Shown in pieces: positions 7,301 to 53,567 of a stretch of DNA of 64,000 bases (within the stretch, counting starts at the first letter, position 1; the number at the start of each line of letters is the position of its first letter). The notes under the pieces are model-generated. The model saw only the letters and a program-made list of their open reading frames with translations, searched no databases and was not told the origin of the DNA. The DNA comes from Perna viridis (lineage: Eukaryota): NCBI GenBank assembly GCA_037379345.1, contig CM074517.1, forward strand, positions 5,642,001 to 5,706,000. Direction: 5' to 3'. The position numbers and the translations under genes were made by a program.

Positions 7301-9370
7301 CTATGTCTTATGGAAGTCAAATCTCAAAAGTCGTAAAAATGTTCTTTTGAATTGTTGATTGGCAAAAGCGTAACAGAACGGGTTGACGGGACTATTTAAG
7401 TAACATAACCAGTATGTGAAACTATAGAGTATAACATTTACACAGTCAGCTTTGCCACAAACACCGATGATGAACACCATCACATGATAGGGTGTCCAAC
7501 AAAGCACATAAGCACCTAAGATGAAGCTTATTGTTCGTAAAGCTTTCCGTGCTCGATTCTCTGACTTTGACTTTCTATTGTCTGCTTTCTGCTTTTCGCG
7601 TTCTCTTTGTTTTTGTTTCGCTCGTATTGACTTGACAAGAGCATGAAAGGGACTCCCAAACTTGTGTGTCTTTTCACTGGTTTCTTCGGCGGTGAGTTTT
7701 TGTCCCATGCTTTGTTGTTTTACAAGACCTACGACATTGTTCCAGGTTTTGCCGTTAGCAGGCAACGGTTTTAAAGAATTTGTATTTGCCATTACTGTAA
7801 TGTTTGTACCAGGTTGCTCGTGCTCCTCGTGCATGTCAACACCACTATCTAACATAGAAACGCACGTGGATAGCTCTTCCGGTATGGGAATGGGAAGATA
7901 CTTGTCCTTACGTTTTTTCCACACCGGGGAGCTTCTATCGTCATCTGTGGAGGAAGCATATTCAATAATAGGTTCAGATAACAGTCGTATATTTTCGGCC
8001 GACTGTAATGATTTCAAACTCTCTTCATCTATGTATTTACATCCACACAAAATATCGTTCTCCAAGAGTGCATCGGTGGACTTCGGGGTGTTTTCCATGT
8101 GCATCACAGCGTTATGATAGTTATTAATTTCTTCCGAATGCTTTTCTACCGAATCACTCTTTTCTTTATCATCATCCGACGATGTTGGCGCAGTAATCGA
8201 TAGAGCTATTTTAGAAACCTGGTTGAACGATTGACCCAACATTCCCTTTAACGATGGCCGATATGTAGTGTCGGTTTGGACAGCACTATTTACAAAGCAA
8301 GTTTGTTCATCGTCTATATCTTCGTGTCTGTGTTTATTCTTATGAGATTTATGATTTCCACAAGCACCTTGGCTACTGCTATTTTCATCGTCTGATGCAA
8401 AAGCCGGAGAGCTTGATCGGTCCTCCTCTGGATGTTTCGTAAAGCTTGTTGTGTCTATATGTTTTGGATTTTGGTTGTCTACTTCATTTGCAGTATCATT
8501 TATGGTTGGTACTGTTAATGTTTTGTTGTTCTTTTTAGATTTATTTTTATCCTTTGATAAACCCATTGCAGTAGTCATTCGTTTTTGTTTAGCCTCTGAC
8601 TTTTTCTGCAACGAGAGTGCCACATTGTATATACCTGCATATAGCCCAATCATAACGGCAAGAGTGGTCCAATAGTAACCTATAGTCAACAGAAATGTAA
8701 ACAAAGGATCACTCATAAACTGCACTTCACATGTGTCCGGATCAACAGTCCGTTTTCCTACGAAATATTGCCATCCTATAATGGAAACGAAAAACACAAC
8801 AGAAGGAATAATCCATGTAAATGCTACCATTATCACGACTTTCCTCTCAGTCCGCCAGTTTCTATATTTAGCCGGTATTTTTACAGAAAAAAATCTATCT
8901 ACAGTTATGAAAAATACGGTATATTGCGACGCTAAACAAACAGTCCAATCTAAAGAAAGCCACAGGTCGCATAACATCTCTCCCAATGGCCAATATCCTA
9001 GCAACAAATATAAGGTAAAACAAGGCATAGAAAATGTACCAATCAAAAGATCGGAAACCGCTAAAGATGCTATAAAATAATTCGTTGGTTGTCGTATATT
9101 TCGTTCTAAAGCAAACGACAATAGCACAAGGATATTCCCGCCAATTGTAACGATAATCACAATGGCGGCCATTAATCCTAGAAGAACTGTCAACCATAGT
9201 GCATAGGGAGGGGAGTAGTTAGGTGTTCCTGATGTGTCAGTTAAATTTGTACATGTATTATTAACGATACTTCCGTTACACGTGCAGTTGTCAACAACAA
9301 CCAAACCGACATCACAGATTGCATCCATTGCCAGTAATACCACTTCCGATGATATGTTTGCTATTGCCAT
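7301..9370 (-). CDS. mAChR-B: Muscarinic acetylcholine receptor, invertebrate B-type (Drosophila mAChR-B / C. elegans GAR-1/GAR-2-like), 689 aa, uninterrupted ORF
   Basis: Seven TM segments with class A motifs: GNILV (TM1), LAVSD (TM2), CDLWLSLD with D3.32 = D141, DRF, CWTPY (TM6), YWLCYLNSPVNPFCY (TM7). B-type signatures: TVCLASQYTV, DRFFSVKIPAKYRNWRT, GYYWTTL without P5.50, WTPYH, ANQQFKRTF. Six N-glycosylation sequons in the N-terminus and a ~360-aa ICL3. Confidence 0.95.
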   Translation of the reverse strand: MAIANISSEVVLLAMDAICDVGLVVVDNCTCNGSIVNNTCTNLTDTSGTPNYSPPYALWLTVLLGLMAAIVIIVTIGGNILVLLSFALERNIRQPTNYFIASLAVSDLLIGTFSMPCFTLYLLLGYWPLGEMLCDLWLSLDWTVCLASQYTVFFITVDRFFSVKIPAKYRNWRTERKVVIMVAFTWIIPSVVFFVSIIGWQYFVGKRTVDPDTCEVQFMSDPLFTFLLTIGYYWTTLAVMIGLYAGIYNVALSLQKKSEAKQKRMTTAMGLSKDKNKSKKNNKTLTVPTINDTANEVDNQNPKHIDTTSFTKHPEEDRSSSPAFASDDENSSSQGACGNHKSHKNKHRHEDIDDEQTCFVNSAVQTDTTYRPSLKGMLGQSFNQVSKIALSITAPTSSDDDKEKSDSVEKHSEEINNYHNAVMHMENTPKSTDALLENDILCGCKYIDEESLKSLQSAENIRLLSEPIIEYASSTDDDRSSPVWKKRKDKYLPIPIPEELSTCVSMLDSGVDMHEEHEQPGTNITVMANTNSLKPLPANGKTWNNVVGLVKQQSMGQKLTAEETSEKTHKFGSPFHALVKSIRAKQKQREREKQKADNRKSKSENRARKALRTISFILGAYVLCWTPYHVMVFIIGVCGKADCVNVILYSFTYWLCYLNSPVNPFCYAFANQQFKRTFLRLLRFDFHKT

Positions 9371-22190: not shown

Positions 22191-22875
22191 AGTAATCAAG
22201 GGAATCAAGGTTATAGCGGTAATCAAAGAGTAATCAAGGGAATCAAGGTTATACCGGTAATCAAAGAGTAATCAAGGGAACCAAGGTTATAGCGGTAATC
22301 AAAGAGTAATCAAGGGAACCAAGGTTATAGCGGTAATCAAAAGAATGTAATCCAGGGACAAAGACCAGACATGGAATACAGACATACACAACAAAAAACA
22401 TGAAGTAACTAAAACCATACATACAAAGTAACAAAAGCAAATGAGCAACCCGGACTCCACTAAAAACTGGGAGCATGAATCAGGTGCACCGGTAGGGTAA
22501 GCGTCCTCTGCTTTTCTAGAAACAACCGCCCGAGTTGCTAATAAAAAGTCAAGTCCGGGGTAGACGAAAGAAGAAAGGAAAACTATGACACGTTGAACAA
22601 ATCGGTTTTCATGGCGCAGATGGATACACTGTAGCTATCCACGAGTTCATGATGACAATCATAAAACTTATGTAGTGATGACTTCAATCTTCTAGCAACA
22701 TAACCTAGTTCCACGAGCCTATTTGTTAGAATTCTAGCGCGATACAAAAAGTCTGCGTAGTTTCGGCACGCTCTGGCATAACGTATTAGCTGTGATTTGA
22801 ACACTCCATACGCAGGTGCTGAAGGGATGTTGTCACAGATGAAAGGAAAGTTGACAATTTTGAATGAAAAGTCAT
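22191..22875 (-). mobile_element. PLE family A (Naiad-type): RT C-terminus, 3' UTR and 4x 38-bp terminal repeat
   Basis: 22873-22583 translates as DFSFKIVNFPFICDNIPSAPAYGVFKSQLIRYARAC...DLFNVS*, a PLE RT thumb. The ORF stops with no C-terminal GIY-YIG, as expected for N-terminal-endonuclease (Naiad) PLEs. Confidence 0.9.
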
Positions 22876-25800
22876 TTATTGTTTTATGTCTTCAGAATTG
22901 AAATTAGGGTGAAAGTAACGGGGACTACAGTGATTGAGATCTGCTAATTAATTAATGTAGATATTATGAATGTGAAAAGTCCTTTTTCGTGTTTAACCTT
23001 GTTTGCTTTTTATTATTATCATAGTTTGTTTATTTTTCATTATTCAACATTTTTTTTCACTTGCCAAACATTCCCTTTAAGAATCATAGTTGTAATTAGT
23101 TAGCATGGTTATTTTTTCTTCCTAATGGTCTTTAAATTTATTGACTGAACACTGTTCAAATACAATATAGTTGTTCTTCATGTCCTGCCAAAATAATTTT
23201 AAAATTATCAATCTTTCTTATTTTCTTATTATCAATTATTGTGGCAACATATAGGTATTTAATATAAAGAAAATTATTAAATAGATGAAATAAAGCAAAT
23301 TAAATATACATACCCAAATTATTTATACCATTGGTTCGATCATCGCTTCATGTAGTAACCAACAACCTGGAAAACAAGCAATGATGAAGCATAAAGTTGA
23401 AATATTTATAAAGATGTAATTGGCAGTTACTGTAGTAAAAACCCAGCCCGATGATAGGTGGTAAACCCTGGTGTTATTCTGGTGCAAGGTGCAGAAACTA
23501 TTGCTTGTCTTAATTGTCAGAAATCAAATACATGTAAGTTGCCCGATACATGATAAATCTCCAAGTTATCCTGTTCTAAGTTGTAGGAACTTCCGTTAGT
23601 TTAAACAGTCAGAGAAGTCTACGTGAACGCCATTATTTATTCACGGGTACATGTAACTGAGAGATAACTGCGAAAATAGTTAAATGATGTTCGTGCAAGT
23701 GAGTAATGGATATAATATTTATTGTTTTTTGTTGGTTTTTCTCGTTTGTTTTTACTCATTTCTAATCTTTTTTTTAATTTTCTTGTTGCCTGTTTATGAC
23801 CCATACATGACTAGACAAATAGGTAATGTTCTGTATTTCAAGTAGGCAATTTTCAAAACGTCAGAAAACTTACTGGATTTATTGATTGAATCATCACGAC
23901 TGTTACGCTTCATGATGATTTAGAGCAGTTTTGAATTTCACCCTCTTCTCTACTGTATAAATTCAATATATAAAAATTCTACTATCGTCCAGTATTTTGC
24001 AACTCGTTTACCACTAGCAGGAATTAGTGAAAATTGAAAAATAATATTACAACATTTTAACTGAGTAGAATAGTCAACGTCCAGTTCTAGATGGGTTACA
24101 AAATTTTAAGTGGTTTACAATGAATAATACAATACCATAAAAGTGTTGAACAGAAAGAAAATTTATCTTTATCGTAAACACTGCAGACAATCCAATTATG
24201 TAATAACTCATTGAAAATGGTTTATGTTGACAAGTGAAAGGCTGCAATCAATGACAGATGGACTATATTACTGGATTTATTATATTAGTAAAGGTGCAAA
24301 ACAAATGAAAGCTATGCAAATTATTGATGCTAAAACTAAAGTTATCTTAAACATTAAAATTGAACTTTGATGTGATTAACACTTTAGTTATGTTTAATAC
24401 TCTATAATCAAACAAATACTAGGAAGAAATAATCATGAGTAAGGTGAAGAAACATTAATTTTGTTCAAATTGTGCATTTTGTTTTCTCGACTAGCGATCG
24501 ATCGTCTTTAAAAATAATGCACTTCATTTTCAAATAGAGTTTGCACACAAATCAAACATAAATCAACTCCAGTAAGGTTCTTACACAAAAAATCATTTGC
24601 ATAAAACATTTAAATACAGTCATGTTATTTTACAAAGTATTTCATCTGAATGGTGCACGGCTTTCGCTTATCGTGTAGCAATAAATGCTACACGTTACAA
24701 TCACTGTAAGATACAACTCGTGTTTAAAGAGCAATAATGAAATCGCACCAAAAGTTTAGATAATAAGGAAATAGACCTAATCAAACAACTGTAGATTACT
24801 ATGGGAACTTCGTGTCAATCTTTAACCCTCTATATATTTTTCAATTCATTTTGTAAAAGGAAAAGAAATTGGATTCCGTCTCAATCTTAAAAATAATCAC
24901 CGTGTCGATTTCTCTTGAAAATGTAATATGCAACTTCCGGAAAGTTATAGCCTCGTTATGAGATATTTAATGGTGACGTTGATAAACAACAATGATAAAT
25001 CAAATTTGGATTGATTTTGCTTTTAAAACAATACCGCTGGTCTTAAAGATGTTTAGCTTTCAATATCTTCATTTTTCCATTAACGTCTTGTGAATTCTGC
25101 TTTATCAAATTTGTCTGATCTCGGTAAATTTGACGTTGTACATTAAAAGCAATTTTGCCATCATAATGGACATAGTGGTATAAATGAAGACAAACAGCTT
25201 CAGGGTTAAATTTTTAGATGTCAAGCAAGGAAATACGACGTACAGTATTGAGTATTATTGAGTACATTAGTTATATTTTGCTTATTCGGTTTTAGACATT
25301 TACTACAAAACTACAATAAATAATTTGATGTAAAGTGATTTTTATTGCGTAAGACGCATGCCAAATAGTTGAGTGGCGTCTGCATATATGCCATTTTCAT
25401 CGCTTGTAAATTTACACTTATGCCACTCAAGACTTGTCGCTTGTAAAGTGGGACTTAATATGCACTATCAATGTTTAAAATTACTACTGACTTGTATTTG
25501 AGTATTACTCGACAGTAAAAGATATTGTAATGGAAGACTTTTCCCATCCTTTTAATATTTTGTTTTGTCAAGGTTGAACAGGAATGAAAACAAAACAGGA
25601 TATATTAACGAAATTTATTGAAGAAAGTGAAGTATATGTACACACATTTGATGACCAGTAAAATATAACGTTTTCAGCACGCGTCCTATTCATTAAGCTT
25701 TGCTAGTTTCTTTATAGTTCTTGCTAGGTCCAATTATATTTCTCATTTTAATGTAGCCAGTATTTTACAAACAAATTTGGTGACAGTTGTAATATTGTAA

Positions 25801-28946: not shown

Positions 28947-31211
28947 AAATCATACAAAATGATAATTGAAGGTTTTGACCAAAGTGACTGAAAGGAAAAG
29001 AAAGTATTGTTGACTGTGTGCTTTTCAACGAATTTTACTATTCAAAAACACATATTAAAAATGTATGAGCGCATCGAGTTTTGAATGTAGGTGATTATAA
29101 TAAACCGATGCGTCTCTATCTTTATTGATAATGTAATCATGTAATTGAACACCATGTGTCATTAACACATTTTCTCTTAAAATTACCACACCTGCTGTTA
29201 AAATGTAATTTTTACTTATCAATTATTAAAGTTAATTTCGTGATGTTCAAGGGTTTTAATGGAGATGTCTTCTCTTTCAAGGAAAATCGCTTTTTATCAA
29301 AGAAAAGTCATTTGATGTTTTCAAGGAAAAAACGTAAAAATACAATATTGTAATGTCTTAACATTATTAATTCACTAAACCCACAGTTTAATTTTTTAAC
29401 GTTTGCATAATAAATTATCCTTTTACTGTCAAATGACATGAATTAAGCAAGATGGTGGCGAATTTAAGGGGGCATGATATCCGATCTACTTCGCACAGGT
29501 TGCAATCGCTGCATGGATGTCAACTATTTTACACATCTACCATTCTCAGTATTAACTCTTTTTCCTTGAGTAAGTTAGTACAGTAGATTAGAAAAGTTTC
29601 GCAATTATTTATGAGTTTTTGATTTTTTTTTTTCATTCATTATTGAAAATTAAAAACATCAAAGTAATCGCATGCACGTAGAAAAGCATAACGTATTTGA
29701 TATCCAATAAATAAAATGAAGGGTAAAAAATATCGCAAAAAAAATAAGTTTGAATGCATCGTAACTTCTCCAAATACAAACATTCCATTGATGTTTGTGT
29801 CAATATTTTTATTTGAAATTATTGACATTATGTCAGAGATTTAAAAAAAAAATACCGTATTCTGAGCCCTGTTGAATGTGAAATCAGTGTGTCATTTGGT
29901 TACAATATATATTAAATCATGTTTATTACACACGGAAGATAAATATTGGTCTGTTAATTTTGATTAAGATACATAAATATGGATCATCAATTTTGCATAA
30001 GCTCAAGAAAAATATTTAAACAAATCGTTAAGTTACTCAAACAATGAAAATCAACTTTGCAAAATCATTACGTAATGCAAAAAATGTTAGTTCAAGGAAT
30101 TCAATTCGGATCAAATTCGTCAATAAATCATTCAGAGCTTTGATATCAAAGTGAATGCAGAATAAAGAGATGAAAACATTAAGAAAGCTGAACATGCTAG
30201 GGAACAAGCATAATGCCATAGAATGCTTTCATCAGAGAAGATAAATAATTTGGAAAATTACGTAATTTAAGCAAAGGGTGACAATTTGTATTCAAATCAA
30301 ACAAACACTTCAATGAATTAGAAGTGTAAGCAAAATTTGTTCACAAGGACGCTTGTTATGCTCCCAATTTCGTTTTAATCATGTTTTATCACATATGGAA
30401 AATCATATCTAGACTCTGTCTCATTCTTTTCGTGTTTTGTTATAAATCATTCTGAAGTGAAGTCAAATTGGCTGGATTCAAAGGCCACACAAGAGATACC
30501 AAAATTGATTAAATGTATCCAGTAAAAAGAAGTCAGCAATTTTTACTATGCTGTTCTTTTCACTCTTATCTGATTAATCTACAAATCGAAAGCTTTTAAT
30601 TAAACCACGAGAACAAGTCACAATTTATTATACGCCATATTCAATAGAAATATGAAATATAATATATCTTGTCATGGAGGTGTGATACTATGGGGTTTTC
30701 ATGGTTGTTCTACACCGTTTAAGTGACGGTGGTAACGTGTACGAAAATTGAGTTCCGAGAAAGCTGTTGGTGTTACAAGAAATTGATAATATATGTATGG
30801 TTTTTAAAAAATGTTCCATGTCAAAGGTTGTTATATTTAATATCATATACGTGTGTGGAGTAATATCTTTATTCCATATCAAAACTCTATGCGTATGACA
30901 TATATCTCGTAATTGTACATTATGAAAGTCATGTGCCAACATGTGGAAGCTAAATGTCAAAAGGCTGCCTACTTGTAGAGCTGAGGATGACATCTTGGAA
31001 TTGATGTCCGTTGTAACGTTACTTACCTCCTGTGTTTTTGAGGATGCATTAAATCAATTTATAACCTTGACTTAAATTTCAAAATAATAATCATTTCGCA
31101 GATGAAATAAATTTCAGTAGTTTTAAAACACTTTCTATAGAACCATGCGACTAATATTACTACAATCATGGGAAATCATTGTGTTCAAAATTTACCTAAA
31201 TATGATTTTTT

Positions 31212-31475
31212 TCATAAAATGTCAACCACGCCGCATTTTTTGTGCCTGTCCGCAGTCAGGAATTTCTGTATGTATTGTTTTCACTTTCAATTCTGTTTTA
31301 TGTTGCTGGAGAATATGGGAGTGGAAAGTATTGTTTTGGTGTCAATTGCAGTTTGTCCTGTGTTGTGAGGGTTTCTTCGTCATTTATTAAAAACTCTTTT
31401 ACGTGGTTTAAGCTGACTTGTTTCATCACGGTGAGGTTGTTGCCCTTTTGACATATTCACCATATCGATTCTCGT
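31212..31475 (+). mobile_element. PLE family B 3' end containing half of a twister-like motif
   Basis: Matches the reverse complement of 50845-51125 at both ends (GCCGCA...TGTGCCTG...CAGGAATTTCTG and CGGTGAGGTTGTTG...CATATTCAC). PLE assignment rests on the motif shared with the RT-linked copy at 41092-41187. Confidence 0.7.
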
Positions 31476-41279: not shown

Positions 41280-42925
41280 AAATACAATCATTACGCATTA
41301 TTTTAGAAAAAACTGAGCATTCCTCAGCCAAGGATTGATATCTAAACAGAATTTGATAAGACCTTTTGAGATTCATTTCCTCATGCCCCTGATTCAGATG
41401 TATGTCACGCAGATATTTATGGTATTCAAGGAACCAGAGTAGTTAGTACTTGCTCTAGCGTAGCGAATCCATTGTGAAAAATAAACACAATAGACAGGAC
41501 ATGAAGGTATATTGCTGCACAGGTAAGGACAATTTATGATATTAAATTTAAAGTCGTCTTTTTTTTATCAAAAATCTTACTCCTGAGATGTCCACTATTG
41601 CCACATTCGAGATGTAGGTTCAAAAAGATGCAGAACAAGGTGTTTCTGTAAACGCCTGTTTCTTGAGCTCTGGTTGATATATTGAAGGTAACCATTTACC
41701 AAAAAAAAGGGTTTTGTTGATGGACAATAAATCTGTTTGTAAAGTTAAATGTTTTAGCATCTTGTTTTTAATTTTTATTCTCTACGATATTTTGAAGAAA
41801 CTCAGTCTCGTATGAATACAAATCGGCTAGGAGAGGAGCGTAGTTAGTACTCATTTGAATTGCAAACTTGTTGTTGAAAAATAGCTCCTCCAAACGTGGC
41901 AAATATGTTATCAATGAGGAAATCAATCATTTAGCCAACCTGATTTTCCATGTAGCACACTATGCCCTTCTGCAATGTTTTAGAAAAATATGTGGATTTG
42001 TAACCAAGAACAATATAATTTTTCGAAACTGCAAAAGATTTACGAATAAGTCCTATCAAACGAGACTTCAGTTTATCATGTGGCAACGTAGTGTAAGATT
42101 TGAGAAGTCAAAAGTATGGACGGAACCAATTTCTGAAAAGCTGCCGGATTTTAAATTTTGAAGTAATTTTTTGGAATTTTTAAGTAGCCAAATATGATTA
42201 CAACCACTACGAGAGTAGGTGGTATTACAACTAGCTTGCTTTTCACCCTTCACTGCAGACAATATCTTTGCAAGGTAAATTAACATGAAAATCCAGCTAT
42301 ATACTTTTCTTTCTATGGAGTTTTATAAAGTTTGGGAATCCAATACAAGTTAGATAATTCCTCACATTGTTTTGAAGTTGATAGAAGACATGAAAGACTT
42401 GTTGTTGTTAAGAATTTCATCTTTGTCAAAAGTTGTGCGTTTGTATGTGGCATTGTGGGATTTAACTACCAATGCCCAATTCCTTTATAAAGCATTTGAG
42501 GTAATGAGCTTTACAAACAAATACAATGTTGTTTGAAGGTTTTTCCGCAAGAACTATATTATATTTCTCTTGTAGTGAGAAAAGCATCCAAGTGCCTCAC
42601 GATCATTGACACGAACTTGGGTCTTTTACTGACATATTTCTTGAGATTGTCAATACGATTCCGTACCAAAGATGGTACGTATCCATCTGACAATGACTTG
42701 TCCTTTGTCCTTTTCTCTCTTTATCCATGATGTGACATAATTTCAACAGCAGTCATTATGGTTTGGAAATTTATTTTCCAATTGAGGCGCCGTGGTTCCC
42801 TGAATTGTGGACTATGAGAAACGACCTTTACATAGGAGTTCATTTTAACTGATATTCATATCACCAGTGATGACATGACCAGAAGGACTGTAATTCAACA
42901 GTGATGAAGCATAGTTACATAAGTA
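41280..42925 (-). pseudogene. Decayed Naiad-type Penelope-like reverse transcriptase ORF (family C)
   Basis: Manual translation across frameshifts gives CNYASS..YSPSGHVITGD (42919-42860), PQFREPRRLNW, IVLAEKPSNNIVFVCK, LYWIPKL (42345-42328), TFDFSNL/YTTLPH (motif A, 42115), FLIDNIF..FGG..FQQ, IQMSTNYAPLLADL (motif B, 41860), FNFTNR/DLLSIN, KIFDKK/DDFKFNIINCPYLCSNIPSCPVYCVYFSQWIRYARAS. Confidence 0.92.
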
Positions 42926-44472: not shown

Positions 44473-45745
44473 CAATACCAAACAACCAAGGCAACAGATA
44501 CCATAAAGTCGCAAACAGCATGAAGGGTAATAACAATACCAAACAACCAAGGCAACTGACACCATGGAGAAGAAAACAGCATAAAGGGTAATAACAATAT
44601 CAAACAACAAAGGCAACAGATACCATAAAGACGCAAACAACATGAAGGGTAATAAAAATACCTAACAACCAAGGCAACAGTTACCATGGAGAAGAAAACA
44701 GTATGAATGATAATAACAATACCAAACAACCAAGGCAACAGATACCATAAAGATGCAAACAGCATGAAGGGTAATAACAATACCAAATAACCAAGGCAAC
44801 AGATACCATAAAGACGCAAACAGCATAAAGGGTAATAACAATACCAAACAACCAAGGCAACAGATACCATAAAGTCGCAAACAGCATGAAGGGTAATAAC
44901 AATACCAAACAACCAAGGCAACTGACACCATGGAGAAGAAAACAGCATAAAGGGTAATAAAAATACCAAACAACAAAGGCAACAGATACCATAAAGACGC
45001 AAACAACATGAAGGGTAATAACAATACCTAACAACCAAGGCAACAGTTACCATGGAGAAGAAAACAGTATGAATGATAATAACAATACCAAACAACCAAG
45101 GCAACAGATACCATAAAGATGCAAACAGCATGAAGGGTAATACCAATACCAAATAACCAAGGCAACAGATACCATAAAGACGCAAACAGCATGAAGGTTA
45201 ATAACAATACCAAACAACCAAGGCAACAAATACCATGGAGAAGGAAACAGCATGAAGGGTAATAACAATACCAAACAACCAAGGCAACGGATACCATGAA
45301 GACGCAAACATCATGAAGGGTAATAACAATACAAAACAACCAAGGCAACAGATACCATAAAGACGCAAACAGCATGAAGGGGAATAACAATACGAAACAC
45401 CCAAGGCAACAGATACCATAAAGACGCAAACAGCATGAAGGTTAATAACAATAATTAACAACCAAGGCAACAGATACCATGGAGAAAGAAACAGCATGAA
45501 GGGTAATAACAATACCAAACAACCAAGGCAACAGATACCATGAAGACGCAAACAGCATGAAGGGTAATAACGATACCTAACAACCAAGGCAACAGATACC
45601 ATGAACAAGGAAACAGTATAAAGGGTAATAGAAATACCTAACGACCAAGGCAACATAAACAATGGAAACATTGTGAAGGGTAATAACAATACGTAACAAC
45701 CAAGGCAACAGATACCATGCAGACAGAAACAGCATGAAGGGTAAT
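44473..45745. repeat. 61-bp minisatellite (AATACCAAACAACCAAGGCAACAGATACCATAAAGACGCAAACAGCATGAAGGGTAATAAC), ~21 copies
   Basis: Exact 61-bp spacing (44474, 44535, ...). Confidence 0.97.
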
Positions 45746-46139
45746 GACAAAATTACCGAACTGATTAAGGCAATATATTCAAATGGAATGTACGTAAAAA
45801 AAAATGGCACTATCATGATACAAACCGTAATGTTGGAAACAACCGCAATACTCCATGTGAGACCGAATATTTTTAAGGACCGCAACATACGTGTAACAGG
45901 AAACTAGAAAACCTGCCATTAAAAGTTTGATATTACTTAAAAGAGCAGTTTTCGTTCTGTTTTTGTTTATATATAATATAATATTTATATATAATATTGA
46001 CTTGTTGTGACATGTATCCTACATAACAGCACCTAGATGAGCTGTACCGTACTATTACGTCGTGTACCACTTTACAGCCCTAGATTAATCCTACGAGGAG
46101 GAATGATCCGCCCAGCGAAAGCTATATTTTATATAGCCT

Positions 46140-47127: not shown

Positions 47128-48510
47128 AAAAAATAAAGTTACTTTTAGTGGTTATTATGACTTTCTTTTTGGTTGCTCATTATTGTTTTATATTTGTACA
47201 TATTAAAAATATGGGTCGTATAAGGTTTCGATCGCAGTGTAACATTTTCCCAAAGTTTGTAAAAGAAAGTTTTTTCACCTCTTTCTTAAAATGATTATTC
47301 TAGAAAATTCAGTTAATCATCGAAAGTTTTTGTTTAATCAATTTTGTAGAGAATGAAAGAGACGAAACCAATTTGGGACGATTTAATATTTAAAGTGTGT
47401 GTTTAAACCGTTTCTTTCCCTGATATTGTACCCGATAAAGACCGATATTTACGGTCCAATTTAAGTTCTTTATATAGACATTTTGAGGGTTATTGAGTCA
47501 ACCAATATGGTAAATGTGTTTGCAATGTTATGAAACATTGACTATTATGATTTGCATGTATTTATAATGCATTATTACGGTTATTATTATGATATAAATG
47601 TGGAATGAGAAAACAACAATGAAACAGGTCTTTTGAAATAACATTATCCTTATTTTACTGTTTATTAACATCTAAAAAGGATGTCCACGTTTGATACATC
47701 ATATGAGCAAAACTATAAATGAGCAACTCCTACTATAGTTGGATAGCTGGGTTACTATAAATCCCTATCATTTGGATAGCGAGTTACAAACGTCACACAC
47801 GTCATAGGCGTATTTTATTGCATGTACACGTCATAGAGTCTTGTTAATGTATATTTCGTGTATGCATATTCATTGTGTATGTTTAAATCATGTTTATTTA
47901 CTCCATATTTGCATGATATTATTTCATCTCAAATATTGGTATATAATCGTAACAGTAAGACTTATTATTGTCCCCTTTCTTGTTACAGTTAATCTTCTCA
48001 AATGGTATAAAGATAAAAGAACCATAATAAAGTGATGACTTTAATTGACTGTATGAAATGAACCCTACCTGTAAATTTCGATAATTCACATGTATAATTT
48101 ATTTTGTACTTTTACTCTCGGTCTTTCTACTGTTACAACGTCACTGCACTTTTCCTTTGTAAAATTGCTTTACGTCACCGGTGCTTTGGAAAATTTATTT
48201 GAAAATAACACTTTATTATTGAGGACATCTATATAATAAACAGAATAATCATTCCATTATCATGAATAACAAAAATTCAGTTATGCCGAGAACAAAACAA
48301 GTACTGCACATCCACAAATGCTTTGTCTTCTTGAATTGTGATGATATTTTAGTTTCTCCATCCCATTAATTATGCTATAAATAATTGACTCATTTGATAA
48401 TTGAAAACTTTCCTTCATGTTTATTGATGTTTAACCTTTTCCTCTATTCATCCTCTATCTGATGTCTCGATTTTTTCTTTAAATTTAGTTTCAATATTCA
48501 TTTTCATCAT

Positions 48511-48664
48511 TTTTGTGCTGCGCTAAACTTCTTACAATTAGGCTTCTGGAACAGGGTTATGTTGCTACAAAATTGAAGGTATCATTACAGAAGTTTTATT
48601 GTCGTCATTATGAATCCCTGGATCGTTACAGTGTATCCCTCTACACCATGAGAACCGATTTTTT
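48511..48664 (+). mobile_element. PLE family A RT C-terminal fragment
   Basis: Translates as LCCAKLLTIRLLEQGYVATKLKVSLQKFYCRH..., matching the 22583-22804 ORF. Confidence 0.85.
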
Positions 48665-49408
48665 TCTTTAATTTTAGTTTCAATATTCATTTTCATTACC
48701 CGATTTTTAAACATTAGTTGTACTATCCTATCCCCAAAGACATCAAACTTGCACGAATAAATTTTGGAAAACCCGATTCATTATATAATACATGTAGTAG
48801 CCCAAGTGCTAGGTTTTATTTTAATTTTAGTATTATTCATCAACAGGTTTTGAATATATTATTGATAATATTTTACCAAATAAAGTAACCGTCGACATGG
48901 AATTACTAATATTCTTTGATAGGGTTCAATATACTCAATGAAATTACTCAACGCATGTCTTTGAAGTCCTTTATTGTATGCACATTTTTCAGGTTTACTT
49001 TAATTTCATGCTTAAATAACTAAGTTAATAAAAGGTCGGAGTAATTATTAGGTAATAGAGGTAGAAAAAATATCAACTATTTAGTATGTTCATACTAGAG
49101 TACTTATAATGTTAATTTTTATTACTTTTGATGATGTGTGATGACAGGATTCAAATAAACGAAACACCTTTACAAGACAATTTTAAAAAATACATGAAAA
49201 ACAAACAAAAAGAAGGAGTCAAATGCACTATGATAGCTGTTAATAAATATGATAGCTCTTGATAGTATTTCGTAGCAATAAAAATACATTACTGATCTTT
49301 TCAAACGTGTCGCAAAAGAACGCAACTAAATACTTCCTACATACATGGGTATAAAATTTAAATTGTAATATTTTAATTCCTGACGATTTGGTTTTTTACA
49401 ATTTATTT

Positions 49409-49592
49409 CATGCCAGAGCTTGCTGTAACTACGCGTGCTTTTTGTATTGTGCTAGACTTCTTACAATTTGGATTCTTGAACAAGATTATGTTGCTAAAAA
49501 ATTGAAGTCATCACAACAGAAGTTTTATTGTCGTCCTCATGAACTCGTGGATCATTATGGAATATCCATCTGCACCATGAGAGTCGATTTTT
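49409..49592 (+). mobile_element. PLE family A RT C-terminal fragment
   Basis: ORF 49388-49606: HARACCNYACFLYCARLLTIWILEQDYVAKKLKSSQQKFYCRPHELVDHYGISICTMR. Confidence 0.87.
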
Positions 49593-50844
49593 TTCTTCAA
49601 ACTTAGTTTCAATATTCATTTCATTACTCGTTTTTTTTTAAAACATTAGTTGTAATATCCTATCCCCAGAGATATTAAACTTGCACGAATAAATTTTGGA
49701 AAACCCGATCCACTATATAATACATGTAGTAGCCCAAGTGCTAGGTTTTATTTTAATTTTAGTATTATTTATCAACAGGTTTTGAATATATTATTGATAA
49801 TATTTTACCAAATAAAGTAACCGTCGACATGGAATTACTAATATTCTTTGATAGGGTTCAATATACTCAATAAAATTACTCAACGCATGTCTTTGAAGTC
49901 CTTTATTGTATGCACATTTTTCAGGTTTACTTTAATTTCATGCTTAAATAACTAAGTTAATAAAAGGTCGGAGTAATTATTAGGTAATAGAGGTAGAAAA
50001 AATATCAACTATTTAGTATGTTCATACTAGAGTACTTATAATGTTAATTTTTATTATTTTTGATGGTGTGTGATGCCAGGATTCAAATAAATGAAATATG
50101 TTTTTAAAACAATTTAAAAAAATTAATAAAGAGAGTCAACTGTACTATAATAGCTGTTTATAGTATTGCGTCGCAGGTAGTGTTTTAGTGTTTGTTTCTA
50201 TGAAATTCGAGTGTAGTAAGTTTTGTTTTTATTTTTTATTCTTTATATCGTTGTTATTTATGGCGGCGGATTATGTCAGTTGTTCTTAAAGCCTTTTAAC
50301 TATGGTTGGCATTTTACAGTCAACAAAATATATAACCAAAGATTTGTTGACTTGCGAGGTATACTTAACTTCTCATTTATGGATTAGATAATATGCTTTT
50401 AGTTTCGTGTGTTTTTATTGTTCGCCAACACAATTTAAGAATTTGCAGGTTCTGTGTGAACGTTCAGTTGAAATACGATATTTTGATATTGAATTAATTT
50501 TATTTATTCAAAAGACTTGATGTCGTAGTGTTTCTTAAAGAATGGGGATGCTTTCATCTCCCAAACTTATCTTTCAAGGCCAACATATTTGTCAAGTGGA
50601 GTATTATAGTTGATACCTTTAATGATATGGAAAATGGTCGTTAAAATTGTCATAATTTTTTAATGCAGGAAATGAAGAAAAAAAGAAGAAATTTTATTAT
50701 CCGTATGAATGGGCCCGTAAGGTTCACGTATGTGAAATGTCGAAATAACAGCTTTGACATTAGAAATAAAAAATCCATTTTAACTTTTTTTCGTGACAGT
50801 TAAAACTGTTCCAATATGGGTTTAAATGACTATATTACATTATA

Positions 50845-51160
50845 ATGTGAATGGAAATAGTGAATATGCCAAAGAGACAACAACCTCACCGGGATGGAAA
50901 ATGTCTGCTAAAGTCACCCATGGGTCTTCAATGTCCTCAAACGACAGGGCAGGCTGCAGTTGGCCCCAAAACAACATTCTACACAGGTACAGCGAAATAG
51001 TTGCCCTATATACGTACTCCAGCTACAGAAAAGTAAACCGAAATGAAAACGAAACAATACATATTGTGACCAGAAATTCCTGGCTTGGAGCAGGCACAAA
51101 ATGAATGCGGCGGTGTTAAAGTATTTTGGCGAGATTAGAACCCCCTACCGTCCCTTAACA
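50845..51160 (-). mobile_element. PLE family B 3' end
   Basis: Homologous to 31212-31475; contains the best-preserved twister-like core. Confidence 0.72.
51078..51149 (-). ncRNA. Twister-ribozyme-like motif (permuted)
   Basis: Sense strand: GGTA GG GGGT...TT TAA CACC GCC GCA-ttcattt-TGT G CCTG CTCC AAGC CAGG A. Compare the rice twister core UAA CACU GCC aau G CCGG UCCC AAGC CCGG A ... AGUG GA GGGG. Confidence 0.65.
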
Positions 51161-53103
51161 TGTTTATATTGTGTGAATTGTACAATTTCTCCGTTACCAA
51201 ATTACACAACATAAGATACACAATTTCCCTGTACTACGTATACACTGCATACAGAGTTTTAAGTGTTATAATGTCTTTTCTATATTTGCCTTTGTGTCCT
51301 AATTTCAAGATTTTTTTTGCAGCGCGATTTTTTTTCAGTTAGTAATAAACTCAACAAATGTGACACGTATTTTTCAAAGCTCAAGGGTGTGAATGACGTC
51401 CTCTTTTGTTATTTAAAGAAAATTAGTGAACAAATAGTAAAATAAAGACATTGCTAATGATTAGTTTACAATCATATTACAAAATCTTCAAATTACAAGA
51501 CACGTCCTTAATTTACTCATTTTTTTAATATGTTAATCTAATATGTAACTTATTTTTAAAAGACATATAATACTTATTGTACAAAATCTGTAAACATGAA
51601 GATCATTTGATAACAGAAAGGCAAGTAATTAGGCCGCAAGCAAATTGACCATCAATAAGTTGACTGGAATGTACGAAGTACAAAGTGATTGAAATAAACA
51701 ATAAATCCTAAGTTTGACTTCCAGCAAATTATTAAAATGTGGAGACAAAATGAAACAAAGAATTAGTTAGCTGCAATATCTGGTGAAAACATATCACTGT
51801 AATTTCCCGTCATTTTTATGACTTCCCCAATTGAAATTATGTGGCGCAGCAAATGGAAAAAAATCAAAGTATTGTTACAAGTAAATTGATAATACTCATG
51901 AAATCTTTGCTTATATTGATGTTGTTATTTTTTATTCTGTGATAAAATATAAAAGCCTCCCAATGACAAATACAGGGTTTTAACACTGAGAAAACGTATC
52001 GTTGATTGATCATAACTCGCAAGTCCCACACAAAGCGTAATTTTCAATTAAAACAGTGTTGCAGAAGGAAAACGTATTTACAGTAGCCACGCAAATTTCT
52101 ACTATAAAATTATTTTGACATTGACCTTGATATTGAAGCATGTTATTCTAATAAAGTCAAATTACTTGATGTCTAAAAGGTTATACAACTTGTCTATGCA
52201 ACAAGATCTGATACTTTAAAAGGACGACCATGTAGGCCACAAAAAAGTATTATTAAGTAAGTATTGAAGTCACCAAAAATATATTAGCTAATGATAACTT
52301 TATTAGACGTGACCAAAACTTCACATTTCAGGTTTGTCAAGTGACCTTACCTTATGATACTGCTATCAAAAAATGCATATCAGTCAGGACTACAAACATC
52401 TGTTTTAAAAGATGGGAGTATAGTTGCCATGGAGACATAAAAATAGTATAAAACTGTGTTCAAATAAAGCAATGAGAAGGTACAATGGTTTAAATCCATA
52501 CACCTCGATGTTTAACAAATAAGACTAAATCATATAATTCATTGGAGTAGCCTCTTTACAATGGCCATTCGGACTATACTTACACGAGGAATGTATGTAT
52601 AAATACGTATCAATCAACAGATGAAATTTCATCTTGTTACAAAGTGGTATTAAGTCACAAGGTATTTGTATAAATAAAATTGTTTCATTTGATGTCTAAA
52701 CTATTTATCGAATTGAAAAGAGATGATATTGACTGGAAGGTTGAACTTGAGTTCAGTGGAGTGTTTACATTAATACGACCTCAAAGTAACTCGTGTCAAG
52801 ATCAGAGCAATTCATTACTAGATCTTAAAGTATAAGTCTATGTCAATGTGTAGGGTATTGGGGTCACAACATATTTTGTAATATGGATAAAGTTACCATT
52901 TTTAATTGAATGGTACTTCTAAAACCTAGGGCTGTAATAGTAATTCGTCTTGTGCATTTAAGCTTCCTATCATTTGAAGAAATAATGCATCACTGACCTG
53001 TTTAAATGTGTCACAACAGAACTAAATACTTCCTACATACATGGGTACTAAATTTAGATTATAATATTCTGATTCTTGACGATTTGGTTTTGTACAATTC
53101 ATT

Positions 53104-53567
53104 TTATGCTAGATCTTGCCGTAACTACGCAGACATTTTGTATTGTGCTACAAATGTAGACATCTTACAGTTAGGTTTTTTGAACAGGGTAATGTTGCTA
53201 CAAGATTGAAGATATCATTACAGAATGAATTCTAATTTCGTCATCATGAACTCATGTATCTTATTGTGTATCAAACTGCCCCATGAGAACCGATTTGTTT
53301 GCCGTGTCATATTTTTTGCTTTCCTCTTTCGTAAACTTAATGTGGGTGTTTCTAGAAAACCAGAGGACGCTTATCCTACCGGTGCATCTGGTCCTTGCTC
53401 CCTGTTTTAAGTGGAGTCCGGGTTGCTCATTTACTTTGCTTCTTTGTACATGTTATTTTGGTTATTTAACGTTCTATGTTGTGTGTGTCTGTTTTCCCTG
53501 TCTAGGCTTTATCCTTGGAATCTGAACTTTTAATTTCCGCTCGAATGTTAGTCCTCTTGATTACTCT
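53104..53567 (+). mobile_element. PLE family A, RT C-terminus plus 3' UTR, diverged
   Basis: YARSCRNYADILYCA... followed by TCTAGAAAACCAGAGGACGCTTATCCTACCGGTGCA...CTTGATTACTCT. Confidence 0.88.

Follow-up and report, generated by a model that had tools for sequence, protein, structure and literature searches.

A twister-like motif with type-P5 strand order and two palindromes in place of P1 in the 3' tail of a Naiad lineage, with a decayed copy in Perna viridis

Is a short stretch of the Perna viridis genome that carries the letters of a twister ribozyme the trace of a ribozyme, and if so, to what kind of element did it belong? The stretch lies on the minus strand of a segment of 64,000 nucleotides (nt) (contig CM074517.1, positions 5,642,001 to 5,706,000; hereafter the window), and a sequence-only reading had proposed that it is a permuted twister in the 3' region of a Penelope-like element of the Naiad type. 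Among retroelements, it is the Penelope-like elements that are most closely related to telomerase. Hammerhead ribozymes, the role of which is unclear, are found in nearly all of their clades, and Naiads are the most abundant of these clades in many marine invertebrates. The type-P5 permutation of the twister reportedly goes back, like the ribozyme itself, to work of Roth et al. in 2014, and the Rfam twister clan (CL00120) comprises RF02684 (type P5) with RF03160 (twister-P1) and RF03154. The window locus is probably best explained as a relic of a motif of ~100 nt, the intact form of which is a type-P5 twister in the 3' tail of a Naiad lineage. That helix P1 of this twister has been replaced by two covarying palindromes, and that it is active only when two copies meet, may well be so and is put forward tentatively. 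The interpretation given in the sequence-only reading is supported at the level of the family and across lineages; what it described at the locus itself was partly confirmed.

In the window (1-based positions, motif read 5' to 3' on the minus strand), a decayed copy of the motif spans 51063..51171, where R1, a covariance model built from Perna viridis family copies only, matched end to end (65.7 bits, E 1.7e-13). The letters that had been described for the minus strand are all present in their places: UAA (51118-51116), the P2 3' strand CACC (51115-51112), the T2 strand GCC (51111-51109), the P3 hairpin GCA...UGU (51108-51096), a G before P4 (51095), P4 itself (CCUG, 51094-51091; CAGG, 51082-51079) closing the 8-nt loop CUCCAAGC (51090-51083), which holds the partner strands of the T1 and T2 pseudoknots, and the conserved A after P4 (51078). 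Three bases beyond this A is a P5 3' strand, UCUGGUC (51068..51074), the 5' partner of which is missing. The U at 51118 and the A at 51117 (51117..51118), previously predicted to be the scissile pair, align with the U|AA that stands 5' of P2 in family copies and foreign lineages alike, and also with the UAA of the Rfam twister-P1 consensus, and it is at the homologous bond that an intact copy would be expected to cleave. Upstream of UAA, a G-run (51145-51141) precedes a 22-nt stretch; in alignment with family copies, the region 51119..51145 corresponds to the T1 G-run and a decayed insert in the place of P1, and remnants of two palindromes can be recognized, namely CUAAUCUC (51138-51131; intact form GUGAUCAC) and AAAAUACUUU (51127-51118; intact form AAAGUACUUU).

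The 5' part of the motif is a different matter. When the window was compared by BLAST with 29 other copies, homology started at 51143-51151 and ended at ~50841, and the sequence upstream of ~51145 was not homologous to other copies. Of the letters GGUA-GG-GGGU, which had been taken for the partner strand, GGUA is therefore flanking or badly decayed DNA; P2', GA and the P5 5' strand are lost. The GG in place of GA was rightly regarded as a defect of this copy, the family having GA. What remains at the locus is ~300 bp from the 3' terminus of a Naiad-type element, truncated on the 5' side and sharply bounded at the 3' end (50841..51145, minus strand). As no open reading frame (ORF) of at least 80 residues occurs on the motif's strand between 51150 and 56000, the motif is not inside a recognizable element here; its placement in the 3' region of a Penelope-like element holds for the family and not for the window, where the fragment (51145-50841) is isolated and without an ORF. 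Of the 44 structural features scored, 12 are lost in the window copy, which puts it among the worst copies scored; it is probably a dead relic, 5'-decayed or truncated and inactive, as had been suspected. Taken alone, it makes a weak case against chance; the case made by the family is strong.

A BLAST search of the 723-Mb genome with 161 bases that include the motif gave at least 809 candidates, the scored ones being 79-83% identical, and R1 gave at least 97 bits at all 150 genome places scored. Other copies reach further upstream than does the window copy. Their 5' ends are scattered and their 3' end is fixed and sharp, ~290 nt downstream of the motif, which is the signature of 5'-truncated retrotransposition, and the longer ones hold broken reverse transcriptase (RT) frames that include the motif VPADKA. 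The family majority (the majority letters printed by the aligner for the 105-nt motif in 45 aligned genomic copies) reads, from 5' to 3', P5, a short linker, P2' (GGGG), GA, GGG, a 22-nt insert, U|AA, P2 (CCCC), GCC, P3 (GCA-loop-UGC), G, CCUG, UCCCAAGU, CAGG, A and a closing strand. Read from its letters, this strand order is that of a twister opened at P5, as had been proposed from the window copy. P5 comprises 11 bp (GGCCAGA/UCUGGCC plus an outer ACAG/CUGU).

Apart from P1, the structural features that define a twister were found in this majority. UAA stands directly 5' of P2, and the same holds for the window copy and for 11 of the 15 copies chosen as representatives; the P2 strand GGGG is followed by GAGGG, identical to the Rfam consensus; the P4 hairpin, with a G before it and an A after it, closes an 8-nt loop NCCCAAGC; and GGG can pair with the loop CCC to form T1. 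T2 can also form, yet its usual form deviates from the canonical G-C, the last base of the P4 loop being a U in most members and a C in the window copy (which ends in AAGC, whereas the majority ends in AAGU) and one other. The elements that the motif has in common with the Rfam twister-P1 consensus are UAA, P2, GCC, P3, P4 with UCCCAAGC, P2' and GAGGG. In a best-fold test, one good copy reached -38.3 kcal/mol (z -3.1) with P5, P2, P3 and P4 all formed, and in the 45-copy alignment 86% of cells pair, versus 43% with partners slid. A strict core descriptor, in which P2'/GA/T1, UAA/P2/GCC and G/P4/loop/A are all demanded with pairing, is passed by the majority sequence; it had no match among 694,052 bases of real sequence, and none in 20 Mb of sequence simulated at window composition.

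As dead copies within a genome decay neutrally, they cannot test selection, and foreign lineages were used instead. A 108-residue C-terminal ORF piece from copy L071 was searched against protein representatives, and the contigs of three matches were examined. On all three ENA contigs (L082, a Tara Oceans metagenome scaffold, L083 and L085) the same motif was found downstream of the homologous ORF, and an exact-pattern scan of metagenome contigs added 15 further contigs with the motif; the foreign contigs, of which there are at least 16 with the motif in the tail of a Naiad-type element, come mostly from marine metagenomes. They were matched end to end by R1 at 38-80 bits, and two more distant ones at 21-25 bits. 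The palindrome types of the foreign lineages have a single exact copy in the Perna viridis genome, and these lineages therefore mostly belong to other organisms. Where the contig also bears an RT (L082, L083, L085, L091, L093, L095, L096, L102 and L104), the motif lies ~500 nt downstream of a Naiad-type RT and on the same strand.

A single layout recurs in the majority sequence and across the foreign lineages, P5/P2'/GAGGG/insert/U|AA/P2/GCC/P3/G/P4 with loop UCCCAAGY/A/P5', so that the full strand order of a type-P5 twister, of which the window keeps only a part, is present in both. Its helices differ in sequence. P5 occurs in at least five sequence classes (for example CCUUUGACC/GGUCAAAGG, GGCUAGAGG/CCUCUGGCC and a 14-bp helix in L082), and when the flanks of five classes were paired with one another, the best partner of every 5' flank was the 3' flank of the same class (-16 to -25 kcal/mol). 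P3 covaries as GCA/UGC, ACA/UGU or ACAUG/CAUGU. In an alignment of 16 sequences, three of the four P2 pairs are changed on both sides, and T1 (GGG:CCC, or GGU with ACC or ACU) pairs in 94% of cells with compensatory changes in two of its three pairs. Covariation, which had been anticipated for P2, P4, T1 and T2, is seen in P5, P2, P3 and T1. The P4 block G-CCUG-UCCCAAGU-CAGG-A is invariant or nearly so, and T2 changes on one side only: its C-G pair is kept, and the other pair is G.U in the Perna viridis family or A-U in eight foreign copies, the canonical G-C being seen only in the window copy and in L073, both outside the alignment.

Over all positions of this alignment, 93.5% of pairing cells pair, as compared to 78.8±1.0% in shuffled alignments; 22 of 32 pairs are changed on both sides (9.5±1.7 in shuffles); and the covariation score is 0.380, versus 0.139 for shuffles and 0.04-0.08 with partners slid. 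In none of these three measures did any of 500 shuffles reach the real value. The alignment was fitted by a model to the nested helices; T1, T2 and palindrome 1 are absent from that model, and T1 and palindrome 1 covary nonetheless. What covariation shows is a conserved structure and not catalysis.

Compared with the type-P5 twister of Rfam (RF02684), the motif has the same strand order and the same conserved elements (U|AA, P2, GCC, P3, G, P4 with an 8-nt loop NCCCAAGY, A and GAGGG), and both pseudoknots are able to form. Their strands vary together, those of T1 through compensatory changes and those of T2 between G.U and A-U. It differs from RF02684 in that the loop ends with U, P5 is unusually long (9-14 bp), the score lies below all Rfam twister thresholds and, above all, a ~22-nt insert with two palindromes takes the place of the P1 hairpin. 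This insert, between GAGGG and U|AA, contains two self-complementary tracts in place of a conserved hairpin. Palindrome 1 is a perfect 8-mer and was found in seven versions (GUGAUCAC, GGGAUCCC, UGGAUCCA, GAGAUCUC, GAGCGCUC, GGCAUGCC and UAGCGCUA). Palindrome 2 has four self-complementary variants (AAAGUACUUU, AAACUAGUUU, AAACAUGUUU and AACCGGUU) and ends exactly at the scissile U; in a distant clade the second tract is AAACC-A-GGUUU. The centres of the tracts are always self-complementary, and a duplex between two copies is therefore favoured over a hairpin loop. In line with this, the insert is unstructured as a monomer (0 to -1.8 kcal/mol), and its homodimer gains ΔΔG of -13 to -17 kcal/mol, versus -6±3 for shuffled inserts.

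Palindromes in the place of P1 suggest, by analogy, a ribozyme that would work only as a dimer. In the intact motif, the long P5 helix would close a structure in which P2, GAGGG, U|AA, GCC, P3 and P4 hold their canonical relative positions and both pseudoknots, T1 (GGG:CCC) and T2, can form. The palindromes could then pair, either inside a transcript of tandem copies or from one RNA to another, and so provide the P1-like helices that are otherwise missing, upon which the twister would cleave at U|A and cut multimeric or read-through transcripts to unit length. A precedent is found in the pseudo-long terminal repeats (pseudo-LTRs) of canonical Penelope-like elements, the minimal hammerheads of which are thought to be dimeric: with their reduced, palindromic helix III, they are described as active solely in dimeric form, within tandem transcripts (Cervera and de la Pena 2014, PMC4209133). 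In both cases, a small motif of the self-cleaving type (predicted here) sits in the 3' or pseudo-LTR region of a tandemly inserted element, and the helix beside the cleavage site is reduced, with palindromic sequence in its place; it is from this replacement, as in the hammerheads, that a need for two copies, and cleavage gated by dimerization, is inferred. The two differ in ribozyme class, the present motif being of the twister class, and in host clade, Naiads having their endonuclease at the N terminus.

The identity of the host is as had been suggested. Two motifs are diagnostic of Naiads, namely DKA as a variant of DKG, and CxC between endonuclease and RT (Craig et al. 2021, PMC8557442). 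DKA is present as VPADKA in Perna viridis family copies and in L091 and L097, and CxC (CNC or CSC) is present in L097 and in the homologues P0038 and P0100; both motifs also occur in related proteins from public data. A single long frame in L091, L095 and L097 contains, in order, a GIY-YIG-like motif, CxC, DKA, RT and a C-terminal extension. The N-terminal feature, upstream of CxC and RT, reads ...IIYLLT-U-NKPGCGIQYVGETGR...RTQEH...PLGLND in these three contigs and more weakly in L071; it rests on motif reading, as Pfam gave no GIY-YIG match on the endonuclease pieces searched. All internal stops of the three ORFs are TGA and the terminal stop is TAA. The TGA codons stand at three places: the Cys that precedes GIY-YIG, a position 8 residues past DKA, and the zinc finger. 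In the selenoprotein Naiads of clams, Naiad_Mmer and Naiad_Scon (PMC8557442), the domains follow in the same order, if the GIY-YIG-like motif is counted, and UGA occupies the corresponding places (the Cys ahead of GIY-YIG, the Cys 8 residues past DKA, and the CCHH finger), a likeness drawn from the published description. On the present side, it is the foreign relatives in which these selenoprotein features were seen, and not the decayed Perna viridis copies.

Between the ORF stop and the motif are hairpins resembling the selenocysteine insertion sequence (SECIS), which scored 23-32 bits with Rfam SECIS_1, just under the threshold of 35 (L091:1018-1082, L095:469-533 and L093:614-678, all on the minus strand, and L083:811-875 on the plus strand). 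The element tail is therefore ordered as stop, SECIS, twister-like motif, and then ~250-290 nt to the 3' end. The ends of contigs L091, L095 and L097 overlap by 77-145 identical bases, giving units of ~4.02-4.03 kb, and these contigs accordingly represent tandem or circular copies of the element. A related Naiad family with a longer ORF (L079-L081) in the Perna viridis genome has a different 3' untranslated region (3' UTR) without the motif, so that the twister is specific to a lineage and not a general feature of Naiads.

Several observations weigh against a functional twister. None of the Rfam twister models reached the gathering score, whether the sequence searched was the window, 20 family loci, one good copy or 8 foreign contigs, and the check that had been proposed for the window copy, a search of 351 bases around the motif, gave no match even at E≤10. 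The type-P5 model RF02684 matched neither the 20 family loci nor the good copy, and had one unrelated 22-bit match genome-wide. RF03160 aligned only with the core, at 24.4 bits on L085 (E 0.0021 on 161 nt) and 20.3 bits on L102, versus a gathering threshold of 67.2. As these alignments are partial and below threshold, membership by score is not claimed. The motif itself also departs from the textbook form. The loop has AAGU and not the canonical AAGC in nearly all members, and as a consequence one T2 pair is G.U or A-U; in 4 of 15 representative copies (L083, L093, L088 and L101a) the U before the scissile bond is a C, giving CAA; and no conserved intramolecular P1 helix beside the cleavage site was found in the insert of the representative copies. 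P1 is reported to be dispensable in mini-twister constructs.

Other points of this kind come from the genome. In none of the 58 genomic copies inspected were all core features intact. Pair counts in the 45 within-genome copies showed no covariation beyond shuffles, as is expected for neutral decay, and RNAalifold returned no structure for the same copies. Nor do the 5' ends of copies pile up clearly at the cleavage site: with 151 exact anchors (17 bases after the site), about 1-3 among the 100 anchors listed have their 5' end at the site or no more than 2 nt away, and about 3 have it at the beginning of palindrome 2, which is at most a weak excess. In contigs assembled from public runs, most of which are only guessed to be RNA, the site is bridged in many cases; ends are not visible in assembled contigs, which speak neither for nor against cleavage.

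Might the motif, then, be a conserved structure with a twister-like fold that does not cleave? It could be a cis-element of the 3' tail that serves the RT for recognition or priming, or a module for RNA dimerization, the palindromes of which would promote template switching and tandem insertion. What is proved by conservation and covariation is a structure, and catalysis is a separate matter; P1 is missing, AAGU stands for AAGC and some lineages have C at -1; the 5' ends are not in excess at the site; the palindrome homodimer is stable; and the motif lies in the region that is copied first by target-primed reverse transcription, with copies ending ~290 nt downstream. However, the invariant positions are exactly those of the twister catalytic core (UAA, GCC, GAGGG, the loop CCAAG and the A after P4), and both pseudoknots have been kept, T1 by compensatory changes and T2 by a one-sided change from G.U to A-U. 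A mere scaffold would need no such set, and dimerization and cleavage are mutually compatible. We therefore regard a non-cleaving element, in its two versions taken together, as unlikely.

A role in the selenocysteine apparatus of the Naiad, as a SECIS or an accessory recoding element, is brought to mind by the in-frame UGA codons of this lineage, by the presence of motif and SECIS in one 3' UTR, and by palindrome 1 of the Perna viridis family, in which GUGA followed by a run of A superficially resembles a SECIS core. But the tail already has a separate SECIS_1-like hairpin ~190 nt upstream of the motif, the motif matches no Rfam SECIS model, and GUGA is not conserved, the other lineages having GGGAUCCC, GAGAUCUC, GAGCGCUC or GGCAUGCC at that place; a recoding function is thus very improbable. 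Even less credence can be given to chance, that is, to a repeat family in which two thirds of a twister are mimicked by accident. The window copy by itself is unconvincing and has no Rfam score, and in the very large amount of sequence scanned partial look-alikes are to be expected. Against this, the restoration of GA, P2 and T1 that was predicted for the family was borne out, the strict descriptor had no match in more than 20 Mb of control sequence, and independent lineages keep the fold with compensatory changes.

If the type-P5 twister of the Naiad tail is accepted as such, how does it relate to ribozymes already known from retroelements? Twister variants occur at the 5' end of non-LTR retrotransposons of the RTE type, such as Perere-3 of Schistosoma mansoni (Liu et al. 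2021, PMC8501958; also remarked on by de la Pena et al. 2020, PMC7761336). Like those, the Naiad motif is an integral part of a multi-copy retrotransposon and presumably processes its transcript. Unlike those, which are truncated, of the P1 type and upstream of the ORF in long interspersed nuclear elements with an APE-type endonuclease, it is complete and P5-permuted, and it lies in the 3' tail of a Penelope-like element with a predicted GIY-YIG endonuclease. As to Naiads, Craig et al. 2021 (PMC8557442) found no canonical hammerhead in them and reported no ribozyme, and the word twister is absent from that paper. The Naiad exception was used there to argue that ribozymes are dispensable for Penelope-like elements or parasitic on them. 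We found no paper that joins twister and Naiad; literature coverage was incomplete, and an earlier publication is possible.

The motif would accordingly represent a known ribozyme class in a new host clade and with a new architecture, P1-less and palindrome-bearing. If this is true, it is the first twister in a Penelope-like element, and its gating by dimerization would be a second, independent case in these elements, arrived at by convergence with the dimeric hammerheads. The argument that ribozymes are dispensable or parasitic would lose force if a Naiad lineage has a conserved, covarying twister. Self-cleavage would then seem to be a recurring requirement, served here by another ribozyme class that has the same place in the element and is, apparently, just as dependent on dimers. 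As a natural variant that lacks P1, the twister would be useful for work on ribozyme structure and function. The current Rfam twister models miss this family, the copies of which are put at thousands per genome. The readings weighed above are directly testable with short in vitro transcripts.

The window contains further traces of these elements. A second, more decayed partial copy of the motif is found on the plus strand (31177..31276; R1 48.2 bits); its homology begins at ~31224, near the cleavage-site position, and its BLAST match begins at reference position 74, which is A(+1). Decayed remnants of Naiad-type RT were detected by tblastn with P0038 at 41561-42919 and 22589-22876 on the minus strand and at 48495-48665 and 49409-49594 on the plus strand. 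The longer-ORF family L079-L081 has its own conserved 3' UTR of ~285 nt, copies of which occur in the window at 53283-53560 (plus strand).

Elsewhere in the genome, a 3'-tail-like sequence (GACATATA...) is joined ~5 nt before the cleavage site at G000:C8:37533948-37533981 (minus strand); judged from its letters, this junction may be a tail-to-site join made from a tandem or circular template. At least 56 other places in the Perna viridis genome match RF03160, at up to 57.5 bits (E 7e-10) and below the threshold of 67.2. These loci (e.g. L032-L036, among them G000:C2:53654043-53654103 and C10:24851628-24851687) have canonical P1/UAA/P2/GCC/P3/P4/GAG layouts, and several have common flanks and follow A-rich tracts. 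They may be the 5' ends of another retroelement family, like the twister variants of Perere-3.

Two features of the window are of another kind. An uninterrupted ORF of 689 residues at 7301-9370 (minus strand) matches seven-transmembrane receptors of the rhodopsin family (Pfam 7tm_1, 188 bits). A minisatellite at 44473-45750, with 21 copies of a 61-bp unit at 86% matches, accounts for the strong AT skew and the stacked, overlapping minus-strand ORFs of that region.

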